A stretch of 63,181 bases of DNA, the filler included, from Reticulomyxa filosa (Eukaryota; Protista; Foraminifera), in NCBI GenBank assembly GCA_000512085.1. It is 23 parts of 23 records of this genome, joined end to end, with 100 filler letters (N's around TTAATTAATTAA, not from the genome) between each part and the next. Parts side by side here need not be neighbours in the genome. Positions count along the whole stretch, not along the records: positions 1 to 4,078 come from ASPP01002749.1; 22 more parts are not named here. One strand, given 5' to 3'. Numbering within the stretch: the stretch's first letter is position 1; every line of letters starts with the position of its first letter. The translations under genes were made by a program, and so were the position numbers. The notes under the pieces are model-generated. The model ran no database searches, was not told the origin of the DNA, and saw only the letters and a program-made list of their open reading frames with translations. Positions 1-4,078 of this stretch are shown here, piece after piece.

Positions 1-423
1 AAACTTTTTTCCTCTTGTTTTTTTTGGATCATACGCTTAATATTTTTTTCAAAAAAGTACTGTTTACAACAAATTCGAATTCGTTTGTGCATTCAAATGG
101 CAGTTAAAATTTGTTTTTCGCAATAAAAAAAAATTTAAGTGTGCTGTTAGGGAGAACTTTTTCTTCCCTTTTTCTACAGTTTCACAGAAAAGTTCGTGTC
201 CAGTGCAGTGCCAGTGGTGATAATACAGATAGTCCCTAGTCAATTTCGCGCCAAAAGAGTTAAATAAACAAGCTGTTTCTTTTTTTCTTTGTTTATTGAA
301 AGCCCGCAAGTTTGGAGCTTAGAAGCAAAACATTAAAAAAAAAGGAGTCGAAGATGTGTTCGAGATTGAAAGTATGATTTCGAGTTCCGGCGCATTTTAG
401 TTATGAATTCCTGTGTTATTTTG

Positions 424-499
424 GTTGTGGATATGTTTCGTGGTGGTTGTGGACATGTTTCGTGGCGGTTGTGGATATGTTTCGTGGTAGTTGTAGATG
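424..499 (+). repeat. 22-bp tandem repeat, ~3.5 copies
   Basis: GTTGTGGATATGTTTCGTGGTG / GTTGTGGACATGTTTCGTGGCG / GTTGTGGATATGTTTCGTGGTA / GTTGTAGATG, contiguous with no spacers. Confidence 0.9.
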
Positions 500-544
500 G
501 GTTCCTGTGTTGCATATTCCAGTATTAATGTTTTTGGGAGCCAA

Positions 545-841
545 GTCAGCCGTCAGCGCACTACAGCGCTTACTACGATCGCGATTTATTCGCGACAAAG
601 TGCGTGCAAGAGGCGCGTCGGTGTTTTGCAGGCAAGCCAAGGCCACATTACAGGCTTGCATCAAGTGCATCACCGACAATAATATTACTTGCAGGACTGA
701 GGTGGCAATGTCCATCTGTGGATGGGCATTAGATGAAGTCTCCCTCCTTGATGTTACCGGCTGTGACCGTGTTAACATAGGGACGAAGGAGACATTATGA
801 CAGCATTGCGCCTACATTCTTGGGCTGACGACGGCCGTGAC
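545..841 (+). ncRNA. Candidate structured RNA, domain 1 (unassigned family)
   Basis: Nested helices: GCCGTC 549-554/GACGGC 830-835; AGGCGC 611-616/GCGCCT 808-813; GTCGGTG 617-623/CACCGAC 671-677; GCAAGCC 632-638/GGCTTGC 653-659; AATGTCCATC 707-716/GATGGGCATT 721-730; GTCTCC 738-743/GGAGAC 788-793; ATGTTA 751-756/TAACAT 773-778. Confidence 0.55.
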
Positions 842-1421
842 GCGACATTGAACCGCATTTTGGAGTTAATTCTATTTAATTAATATTGGTATTCTTATCT
901 TTCTTAAATACTTGTATTTTTTGTAAATAGATTGGCATGGTATTATTTATCGAGATTACGTGTAGTCGATTATTGGTATTTTAATGATCTGGATTATTAT
1001 TTTTTTTTTTTTGTTTGTTCATTTTTTTTTTTTCAATATCGTCCTCTTTGCACCTTTTGCTCCCGTTGCTCATTTTTCCCTCTTTGTATGTGCACTTTGC
1101 TCACGTTGTTCATTGCAAATTGTTTTCCACGTTTATTCACTTTAATTTATTTTGATTCACTTTTTTTTTTGACTGCCTTTTTTTTCAAAATCTTTTTTAG
1201 TACTTTTGTAAACAGATAGAGGAGGGGGGGGGAGGGGACCATCACTTGTTTTTGCTTGTTAGGTTTGTGTCTTCAATTACTTTTTTTTCACTTATTTTTT
1301 TTTTTTTTTTTTTTTATGGATTCATCGGATGTTGGATGGTGATATTCTATTACTATTGTTATCGGATTATGTTATTCCTGCTTATTGTCTCCTGTCCTGC
1401 AATTGGCTCCTCACTAACTTT

Positions 1422-1736
1422 GTGTTGTCCGGCACGCCCGTAGGCCAATGATTTGATGCAGTGTGCATCACGTGTAGTCGCTTGCCACCAGTCCTGCAAG
1501 TAAATAAGTCCACTGATGTGGACAAGTTGAAGATGGCGACTCCGATATACGCGATTTATCTACTGCCGGCCATGTGGCTTGTGTCAGTAGATATTTATGC
1601 GTTTGGGGCTGCGTTGCACCCCCCATATTATGGTCTACGATCTTAATGCGAGCAGCCACTTGTATTGTGGAATTGCTCGCAATACGCTAAAGTGGCCAAC
1701 AATGACAACACCAAAAAATCACGGCCGTCAAAGCGC
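1422..1736 (+). ncRNA. Candidate structured RNA, domain 2 (unassigned family)
   Basis: GTGTTGTC 1422-1429/GACAACAC 1704-1711; CGTAGGCCA 1439-1447/TGGTCTACG 1631-1639; TGATGCA/TGCATCA; AGTCGC/GCGACT; GTCCAC/GTGGAC; ATCTACTG 1558-1565/CAGTAGAT 1585-1592; TGCGAGCA 1647-1654/TGCTCGCA 1674-1681. Confidence 0.55.
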
Positions 1737-2454
1737 GATGCTCCGCTTGATTAAGTTTTGTCTACATCTTTGCCATTTTAATTTTGTTTGCCATAATACT
1801 TTCATTTAATCACACGATCTTGTTTGATTGATATAGTTGGCATTCCATTCGTACAAGTTCAAGATTCCTGATCTTTATTATTTAATGTTGTTGTTTTTTC
1901 TTCTTTTAAATTTTTTGTGTTTGCTATTTGAAGTTTGTTAAATTATTTAATTTTTAATTAAATTTAATAATATTAAAAATAAATCTCTTCACTAGACTCA
2001 TCATTTTCTTCGCTATCAATAAATGATCCATTCAAGTTTACTTTTTGATATTGCGAGTATAACTTCAAATCGAATATAATAATTTACATTTCGTTTTGAT
2101 ACATTTAAATATCAAATATGTCATTTTTATTCTTCTCCAGCCTTCAGAATTCGATATGTTAATATATATATTTGAACCAACAGTGCGTACGTACTCATTG
2201 ATAATTACATGTGCGCAATAACGTGTTCAAACACTTACTGTTTTCATTCAAATCAAACAAATGTATCAAACTTACTTTTTCGTATTTAAATGAATTTGTC
2301 TCAAACGAATGAGAAAAAAAAAAAAAAAAAGCATAAATGTGTACATTGAAAAGCACACATATCATTTGCATATGATACCATATGTGCTGCGTGCGTAGAA
2401 AAAGGTGGATTATTCATTTGGATATATAGATAAGCGAAAGTAAGCTTCATTTGA

Positions 2455-3514
2455 CTACTTTAAAACAACTATAGGCAATATCGTTTCAAATATTAAATAT
2501 ATTGTTATTGACCGTTCATCTTTGTCAAATTTAGTATATGCTTTCCAAGGTGTAGTCTTGCCATCAATGTTTCTGTCGACTTTCAGTTCTGCGCCATGTC
2601 TTCCAAACGTTGGAATGTTTTTCAACATCATCATCTCGCTTACTATTATTATTATTATTATTATTTCTATCTTGGACTTTCTTGGATCTGTTGTTTCAAA
2701 TTTTGTGTGTTGTTTTTTTCGTGATTGTCCTCTTGCGATGACTTTGGCCTGATTGAATCTCACCCAAATGCAATGCGATATCGTCATGATCCAAGGCCAG
2801 TTTGAGCAGTTTGTGATGGCAATTGACATGTATATTGTCAGGATCAATATTGGCGATTTGCAAAAGGATATTTTTGTGGTGTTGCCATAGTGTGTGAGGC
2901 TCATATCAAACTTGACTCGAAACTTGGCAATTTCAACCAATCTAACCAAGTCGAAATCAATACAATAGACTAGATCAACATTCTCACTTACACTAATTAA
3001 TGAATTTTCCTGCTTCATGCAAGCGCACATTCAACACCAACAAATTGCCAGACTATTCGTCTTCATTATGTTCCAAATATAGTATGAAGTGTGGTTGATC
3101 TCTTTTTTTTTTACAAGTAGCAATGTCACTGAACTACCCACTCACCAGCCATTTCTGTTTTTGGCTCGAACGCGAATGTCGAACAAAACCGCACAAATGA
3201 ACGTATTTGTTGACAATGTGTTTACACTTTCGAACTGCATCATCTTGTTCGCTGCTATCGAACGTGGTTTTTTCGTGAAGACTTTTCGTCTTGTCTTTAT
3301 TTTGGCTTTTGTCATTTCCCCATTCTTGTCTTTGTTGTGATACTCGCAGTGGCTGCTTTTGTTGTAAATCGCGAGAGGACAGCATGAACACGCTGTTAGT
3401 AGAAGACGCGTTGCGCTTGAGAAACACATGTGCAGTGCGATCATTAACATACTGAGACGGTCCAGGACATGATGGTGAAACAATTTTGAAAAAAGATAGT
3501 GAACAATTTTCCAT
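2455..3514 (-). pseudogene. Decayed or unrecognised protein-coding gene
   Basis: Coding-like ORF pieces (3134-3550, 2455-3030) with plausible protein text switching between frames; no recognisable domain. Confidence 0.3.
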
Positions 3515-4078
3515 TGAAAAAATTGAAAATTCAAAAAAAAAGTGACTCACGAGATTTTATATCAGGTAACCGGACAAGGCCGGGTGAGGGTAGCAAGGAT
3601 GAGACCGAGCTGGAGCACTGGTTGGGAATGACCTCACTTTGGCAGACACATAAATTTTTTTATCAAAAAATATCAATTTGCCGATTTTTATTTTTCCATC
3701 AGATAAAAATTTTGTGCTAGCTTCATTTTGTCAAAGAAAAACTCGGATTATTGCATAGCCATTTTTATTTTATTTTTGTGTAAAAACTGAGCATTGTCAA
3801 ATCTTAGAAGTGAAATCTGCCTTTGCAATTTTGTGGAAAACAAATTTCGCTATACATTGATAACGTAAAAAAACTCAGTACAAGCAAAAAGATCAAAATT
3901 TGATTGATTTACAGTCATCGATTTTTTGAAAACTGTAAACACAACCAAAGCAATCAATTGACTTTGTTGCGTCTTGTCAAAAAAAATCCATCTAACCATG
4001 TTTGACCTGGATGGTATCTACAGCCCTCGATTGGGGATTAATTTTGGTGAGGAATTGTTCGGGGATTGGAATTTCAAC

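Follow-up and report, generated by a model that had tools for sequence, protein, structure and literature searches.

How did two folded, GC-rich stretches of non-coding DNA in the genome of a foraminifer come to carry exact complements of one another about 800 nucleotides (nt) apart, and does that complement have a role? The locus, at 545-1736, lies in Reticulomyxa filosa, a freshwater foraminifer (PMC7744380), on contig ASPP01002749.1 (GCA_000512085.1), the whole of which, in reverse orientation, forms positions 1-4078 of the window (the entire 63,181-nt stretch of joined genome parts that was analysed); coordinates and strands below are those of the window. A first-pass annotation had proposed a single + strand RNA whose two domains are locked together, across a pyrimidine-rich spacer, by a 22-base-pair (bp) helix under selection. 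We come to a different and tentative answer, to which we give somewhat less than even chances: the locus would hold two diverged copies of a hairpin-dense non-coding unit that point the same way, one of them with a short block flipped, and each copy would fold separately as an RNA of ~300 nt.

The question turns on two islands and the stretch between them:

545-845, no strand assigned: island 1, GC content 0.52, hairpin-dense, with a terminal stem that pairs 545-554 with 832-841.
1422-1740, no strand assigned: island 2, GC content 0.50, hairpin-dense, with an 8-bp terminal stem that pairs 1422-1429 with 1704-1711.
846-1421, + strand: T-rich spacer, unstructured, with T13, T12 and T21 runs and a G-rich run at 1221-1240.

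That two GC-elevated islands stand in AT-rich non-coding DNA was correctly seen at first pass. Their GC content of 0.50-0.52 compares with ~33% in the rest of the piece, and by 200-nt windows it is 0.49-0.50 within the islands and 0.20-0.35 around them. The genes called on the contig, at 0.35-0.37, lie well below the islands too. In AT-rich genomes, structural RNA genes typically stand out by a GC content higher than that of their surroundings, and we count the excess over the called genes toward reading the islands as RNA genes. CpG-island status was ruled out, as the observed/expected ratio of CpG is ~1 everywhere on the contig.

Rich folding of both islands, the next claim of that annotation, also stood up. 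Compared with dinucleotide shuffles, island 1 folds with z = -4.28 on the + strand and -3.85 on the - strand, and island 2 with z = -3.96 and -5.11, respectively. A sliding 200-nt scan of the 4078-bp contig confined the excess over shuffles to the islands (z of about -3 for window 601-800 and -5.75 on both strands for window 1501-1700); elsewhere, called genes included, |z| stayed below about 2.7. The islands therefore fold past shuffled controls, as structured non-coding RNAs (ncRNAs) generically do, at z = -3.9 to -5.8. The excess arises from many short hairpins, not from one foldback, which together with the terminal stem of each island favours RNA; the stems are composed of self-palindromic hexamers together with short direct and inverted micro-repeats. 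Four of the predicted elements recur in the comparisons below:

708-729, no strand assigned: hairpin of 9 bp with a 4-nt loop, directly right of block copy 1 in island 1.
733-798, no strand assigned: long stem-loop of island 1, from the predicted fold.
1508-1523, no strand assigned: hairpin of 6 bp with a 4-nt loop in island 2, adjoining block copy 2 on the right.
1549-1602, no strand assigned: long stem-loop of island 2, from the predicted fold.

As modelled, each island would fold independently, into several short hairpins and a terminal stem of its own, and an RNA role for each island separately is possible. Each would then act as a separate folded single strand, most likely as a structured RNA of ~300 nt made from the + strand. 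We favour that strand for the putative RNA because T runs follow each island there: T4 runs lie 16-45 nt beyond each terminal stem on the + strand, whereas neither island is followed by a T run on the - strand. The + strand shows no poly(A) after either island.

The complement itself consists of two blocks:

685-708, + strand: conserved 24-nt block, copy 1, with exact 15-mer and 8-mer matches to 1482-1503 on the opposite strand.
1482-1503, - strand: copy 2 of the conserved block, 22 nt, in flipped orientation with respect to the sequence around it.

The inverted match consists of an exact 15 nt and an exact 7-8 nt separated by a 2-nt bulge, so that 22 of 24 nt match between sharp ends. The claim that 15 + 7 nt are perfectly complementary was thus exact, and the match goes far past chance. 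Its BLASTN E value is 4e-4, its local alignment score is 37 (19.8 +/- 2.4 in shuffles), and only 0.01 occurrences of a shared 15-mer are expected in shuffles of the piece. Within the block none of 22 nt is substituted, whereas the aligned columns that flank it are 72-75% identical with many gaps.

To ask how the surroundings of the two blocks are related, we flipped the block in island 2, aligned the islands directly and compared the result with 1000 shuffles of the flanks. The best direct local alignment scored 80 against a null of 47 +/- 7, a score that was reached by 1 of the 1000 shuffles, and it joins 1422-1640 in island 2 with the following segment:

620-831, + strand: segment of island 1 that aligns directly with 1422-1640 after the block is flipped.

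The alternative designs, with the whole island inverted in mirror fashion (as transposon ends or an inverted duplication would give), the flanks swapped, reversed, or reverse-complemented in place, all stayed at the null level, and the mirror design scored 51. The direct-orientation result was stable under three permissive scoring schemes; under a strict scheme 26 of 1000 shuffles reached the observed score. With the block excluded, the islands have seven direct 8-mers in common where 1.5 are expected (5 of 500 shuffles reach that number). A 9-mer at 665-673 is repeated in the same orientation at 1463-1471, in each case 10-11 nt left of the block, and the hairpin right of the block starts with the same five bases in both islands. 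Gaps between the copies are mostly of 1-2 nt. Neither the spacers right of the islands nor the sequences left of them show significant mutual similarity, and therefore the relatedness is confined to the islands themselves.

From these alignments we consider it probable, though not proven, that the islands share an ancestor in the same orientation. That ancestor would have been a GC-rich, hairpin-dense, non-coding unit of ~220-300 nt, now present as two diverged direct copies, of which the block of 22-24 nt may be the best-kept part. Template switching in quasi-palindrome-rich regions can yield short in-place inversions, and a micro-inversion of this type, turning the block in place in one copy, would leave the two copies with the perfect 15 + 7 nt complement. 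Blocks flipped in one of two same-orientation copies are complementary by construction, and therefore no pairing function is required of them. Judged by the alignments, the 22-nt complementarity is probably a by-product of common descent and local inversion, not a designed long-range RNA helix.

The proposal of one + strand RNA of ~1.2 kb, with two domains locked by a selected 22-bp helix over a U-rich spacer, has to be weighed against this background. When 545-1736 is folded as one, the perfect helix is present in the minimum-energy fold with pair probabilities near 1, both domains fold well, and the block is unsubstituted amid diverged flanks. The block need not be the mostly single-stranded junction that was described, since it pairs locally in the single-island folds. 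A pyrimidine- and U-rich spacer does separate the islands, with an AT skew of -0.4 to -0.6 that reaches -0.62 at its lowest. However, homopolymers (T21, T13, T12 and the G run) make up the spacer, which folds with z between about -0.9 and +2.7, no better or even worse than shuffles; being homopolymer-rich and unfolded, it looks like intergenic DNA and not like a functional RNA linker. Its T runs would halt RNA polymerase III, no + strand signature is present, and the direct-orientation context accounts for the complement without any pairing function. A perfect Watson-Crick helix gives no information about strand. We therefore regard a single interlocked RNA as improbable. Two observations on the spacer stand apart from this question: the T21 run occupies 1295-1315, and T-run motifs (family D3) recur at 1003, 1141 and 1280, 138-139 bp apart.

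An inverted match with sharp ends on both sides also invites a reading as transposon termini. The blocks, matching over 22 of 24 nt as terminal inverted repeats may, would bound a non-autonomous DNA transposon of 819 bp (685-1503) inserted in a GC-rich target, perhaps excised like an intron from an unannotated + strand open reading frame (ORF). The element would be flanked by a 3-bp direct repeat (682-684 and 1504-1506), or by a palindromic TA within the repeat, with AT-rich flanks; excising 685-1506 fuses the + strand ORFs 447-684 and 1507-1646 in frame; and the inner arms are weakly similar in inverted orientation, to a degree reached by 13 of 500 shuffles. Like miniature inverted-repeat transposable elements (MITEs) and foldback transposons, 685-1503 has a sharp inverted repeat of 22-24 bp with its copies ~800 bp apart, an AT-rich interior and a possible 3-bp or TA flanking duplication. 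Unlike them, it has flanks that are related directly and not mirror-wise, and its interior is T-rich and strand-asymmetric, not self-complementary. The sequences left of the two blocks, one of which would lie outside the element and the other inside it, align directly, while the mirror relation that inverted termini would predict scores at the null level. Little weight attaches to a repeat of 3 bp in flanks that are AT-rich, or to a frame match expected one time in three, and the ORFs, searched as pieces and not as the joined sequence, are without relatives. At ~800 nt, such an intron would also exceed the mean of 87 bp reported for R. filosa about tenfold (PMC13746701). This makes a transposon spanning the blocks very improbable.

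The start of the 24-nt block overlaps a canonical geminivirus/CRESS (circular Rep-encoding single-stranded DNA) origin nonamer, which occurs once, at 680-688. R. filosa is reported to have Rep-like genes (bioRxiv 10.1101/2022.12.15.520654). A rolling-circle origin of this kind was considered and rejected, with the nonamer lying outside any short stem in the folds and no Rep gene on the contig, and the nonamer is probably a chance occurrence.

If the islands are two copies, their hairpins can be compared. The loop of hairpin 708-729 aligns with the loop of 1508-1523, and the loop of the long stem-loop 733-798 with that of 1549-1602; nothing in island 2 corresponds to the large stem-loop that island 1 has left of its block. 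Of the predicted pairs that the sequence alignment carries over, 27 of 41 and 30 of 46 could still form, compared with 12-21 in slid controls. Between these two diverged copies, 22 of the 41 and 25 of the 46 mapped pairs are unchanged and 0-1 changed on both sides. Simulated neutral substitutions at 10-15% per lineage left a fold z of about -1 to 0, and z <= -3.9 was retained by only 2-5% of simulated sequences. Both islands stand near z = -4 despite their divergence; if they have a common ancestor, therefore, either the hairpins have been selected or some process has regenerated palindromes. The hairpins appear, if the islands are paralogs, to have been maintained.

Several observations weigh against reading the islands as paralogous, separately folded RNAs. 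The relationship of the copies is the first of these. By BLASTN alone significance is limited to the 24-nt inverted match, the direct blocks having E >= 0.45, and therefore paralogy rests on a chained, post hoc test, whose flip design was picked after the sequence had been inspected. More than half of the pairs of either island have no counterpart in the other; the 41 and 46 pairs mapped by the sequence alignment of the two copies show no compensatory double changes; the structure conservation index of the two copies is 0.26-0.27; and their consensus by MAFFT and RNAalifold is weak. The strand is the second. Fold energy is alike on both strands for each island, and islands 1 and 2 have 9 and 10 G-U pairs in the + strand folds but 10 and 6 in the - strand folds. 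No excess of G-U over A-C at wobble positions, the strand-specific signal of a structured ncRNA, was found in the islands. The loops are the third, several being of only 3 nt and none of the GNRA or UNCG type, and in this they resemble DNA palindromes more. A T4 run at 624-627 sits within island 1, and no promoter element is common to both islands. Finally, a search of 1-4078 against Rfam 15 gave no match at E <= 1, and at E <= 10 the stretch 400-1900 gave just two noise matches, both outside the island cores.

The strand results also overturn one claim made at first pass, that G-U mismatches in the helices mark selection on a + strand RNA. The - strand folds equally well, and within helices A-C positions, G-U when read from the other strand, occur about as often as G-T positions. 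Together with the unstructured spacer and the flipped block in a same-orientation context, this lack of strand asymmetry speaks against the interlocked two-domain RNA. More generally, equal folding on both strands weakens any claim for a strand-specific RNA.

Much of the same evidence agrees with a reading that keeps the two-copy, flipped-block anatomy and dispenses with RNA function. The islands would then be palindrome-rich repeat or mobile DNA and the 22-nt complement would have no role; they could be relics of non-autonomous elements with hairpins that count at the DNA level, or could have arisen by repeated template switching. Fold and wobble counts that are symmetric between strands are what such DNA would give, as are self-palindromic hexamer stems, micro-repeats and 3-nt loops. 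Most hairpins are private to one island, a 22-bp tandem array adjoins island 1, and a block preserved whichever way round it lies points to recognition as double-stranded DNA or to an origin by mutation alone. The setting is suitable as well, since 30.5% of the R. filosa assembly is reported to be repeats and the assembly to be highly fragmented (PMC13746701). On the other side, neither island is bounded by a terminal inverted repeat with a target-site duplication, and the contig has no transposase and no further copy. The three island ORFs match no predicted protein, the R. filosa set included, although this is an indirect route to copies. Dead relics would moreover be expected, from the neutral simulation, to lose the fold signal that both islands retain. 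We consider repeat DNA of this kind somewhat unlikely, and still a serious competitor to the two separately folded RNAs.

It is also possible that the complement has acquired a use. The block would let two RNAs pair, which we see as a secondary possibility within the proposal of two folded copies. In its full form, two paralogous RNAs of ~300 nt that belong to no described family would have undergone a micro-inversion after duplication, and these RNAs, or a read-through transcript, would pair via the 22-nt block. Such pairing would explain why the block is unchanged amid diverged flanks. We think this version distinctly unlikely. The invariance of the block possibly reflects constraint, whether from a pairing partner or from a site recognised as double-stranded DNA, or else a recent flip or conversion, or chance. 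A scan for the exact 22-nt pattern gave no match in metagenome, prokaryotic genome and viral collections, which says little about foraminifera.

Recognition of double-stranded DNA leads to another reading, in which the islands are cis-regulatory DNA (a promoter, an enhancer or an origin-like element), the block is an orientation-independent protein site and the hexamers are sites for dimeric factors. Conservation of the block in either orientation would follow directly, and the many self-palindromic hexamers, the repeated 7-11-mers at the island edges and the likeness of the two strands would be in keeping. But there is no called gene within 700 bp, the nearest one pointing away; with a CpG ratio of about one the islands are not CpG islands; and fold z values of -4 to -5.8 are not explained by binding sites. 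Regulatory DNA thus appears improbable to about the same degree as the interlocked RNA.

Could the islands be coding after all? The statement at first pass that there is no credible ORF needs qualifying, as island 1 has ORFs of 117 amino acids (aa) on the + strand and 120 aa on the - strand; its substance survives, in that neither has relatives. The + strand ORF of island 1 had no match by phmmer among 1.84 billion representative proteins, word-indexed protein searches with the - strand ORF of island 1 and the ORF of island 2 gave none either, and comparison of the island ORFs with Pfam returned noise only. The frame in island 2 that corresponds to the island 1 ORF is interrupted by a stop, and this, with the gaps of 1-2 nt between the copies, fits non-coding sequence. 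No ORF with relatives or a domain, and no codon-respecting divergence, was found in the islands, which are unlikely to be coding. Exons of a missed protein-coding gene might be suspected from these two ORFs and from a gene-free stretch of 2.4 kb that is long beside the median intergenic distance of 426 bp. Gaps that are not multiples of three, the stop and an island GC content well in excess of the 0.35-0.37 of the called genes nevertheless leave missed exons as the least probable of the readings considered here.

Searches for known RNAs and for foreign sources were equally unproductive. The first-pass statement that the locus resembles no known RNA family was borne out by the Rfam search, and the islands belong to no described family. 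ARAGORN found no tRNA genes, and no A or B box with fewer than two mismatches was present, so that the islands show no mark of a tRNA or a tRNA-derived short interspersed element (SINE). Plasmid and phage sequences gave no BLASTN match to 540-1745, which argues against vector or bacterial contamination. A hammerhead retrozyme or viroid-like repeat was rejected, with no Rfam ribozyme match and a lone 7-nt match to the core pattern at 825-831. A mitochondrial origin was considered because retarian mitochondrial ribosomal RNAs (rRNAs) are fragmented, and it was rejected as well: there is no rRNA-like match, and the piece has long homopolymers and microsatellites. Mitochondrial genes were not found in this R. 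filosa assembly by the authors of a study that looked for them (PMC10127745). Resemblances to U3, U2, RNase MRP, signal recognition particle (SRP) and telomerase-template motifs that had been noted by eye were weak and without Rfam support, and were dropped.

How would two separately folded RNAs compare with systems described elsewhere? Among AT-rich protists, GC-rich structured ncRNA genes are known as the RUF6 elements of Plasmodium falciparum and the small ncRNA classes of Dictyostelium. The islands are like these in being short, GC-rich and non-coding, in lying in AT-rich intergenic DNA, in their strong folding excess and, probably, in their occurrence as several related copies. They differ in having no Rfam match, no A/B box or promoter element and no strand signal. 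RNA virus 5'-3' cyclisation elements offer a parallel in that two structured regions are perfectly complementary at long range, but the islands lie on a nuclear foraminifer contig that carries no viral gene, their spacer is rich in homopolymers, and neither island shows a strand signature.

Template-switch micro-inversions, short in-place replication inversions described in human and other genomes, are the nearest likeness for the block, where ~20 nt would have been replaced by the reverse complement in collinear, quasi-palindrome-rich sequence. Unlike the described cases, the comparison here would be between old paralogs and not orthologs, and the event is neither polarised nor dated. A purely neutral micro-inversion also leaves unexplained why the block is more conserved than its flanks.

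To our knowledge almost no ncRNAs or characterised repeats have been described in Foraminifera, a group in which a single genome is annotated (PMC7744380). Should the islands be expressed, they would represent a new structured RNA family and a case of RNA-RNA complementarity made by local inversion between paralogs. If they belong instead to a repeat family, they would define a palindrome-rich element type that adds to the fragmentation of the R. filosa assembly. In either case the locus carries a caution, namely that a perfect long-range 'helix' between structured regions can come from descent and a flip.

The island edges have features of their own. Repeated 7-11-mers are found there in both orientations, which favours DNA-level palindromes, as do the following variants. 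Variants of an 8-nt palindrome with similar flanks occur at or near four island edges (547-559, 830-840, 1434-1441 and 1719-1737), and the 11-mer at 830-840 is found inverted at 1719-1729. The tandem array mentioned above lies immediately outside island 1:

422-498, no strand assigned: G/T-rich tandem repeat of 22 bp in 3.5 copies with 89% matches (Tandem Repeats Finder; family D2), directly left of island 1.

A 12-nt part of its unit reappears with one mismatch at 1517-1528 in island 2 (family D5).

The remainder of the contig is sparsely annotated. Only two genes are called, at 2455-3018 and 3134-3999, both on the - strand of the window, and no Pfam family is on record for either. The first of them encodes a 187-aa product that matches only itself among 5.8 billion proteins. 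It is also the called gene nearest to the islands, which it faces with its 3' end from more than 700 bp away. Positions 1-2454 have no called gene, a long stretch for R. filosa because its reported median intergenic distance is 426 bp; the same source gives the mean intron of 87 bp, the repeat content of 30.5% and the high fragmentation cited above (PMC13746701). A small GC-richer patch at 3560-3645, within the span of the second called gene and probably its intron, gave no Rfam or tRNA match. An A17 run occupies 2314-2330, and a (TTA)n microsatellite at 2640-2665 lies inside the coding sequence of gene 2455-3018, where it encodes an isoleucine run.

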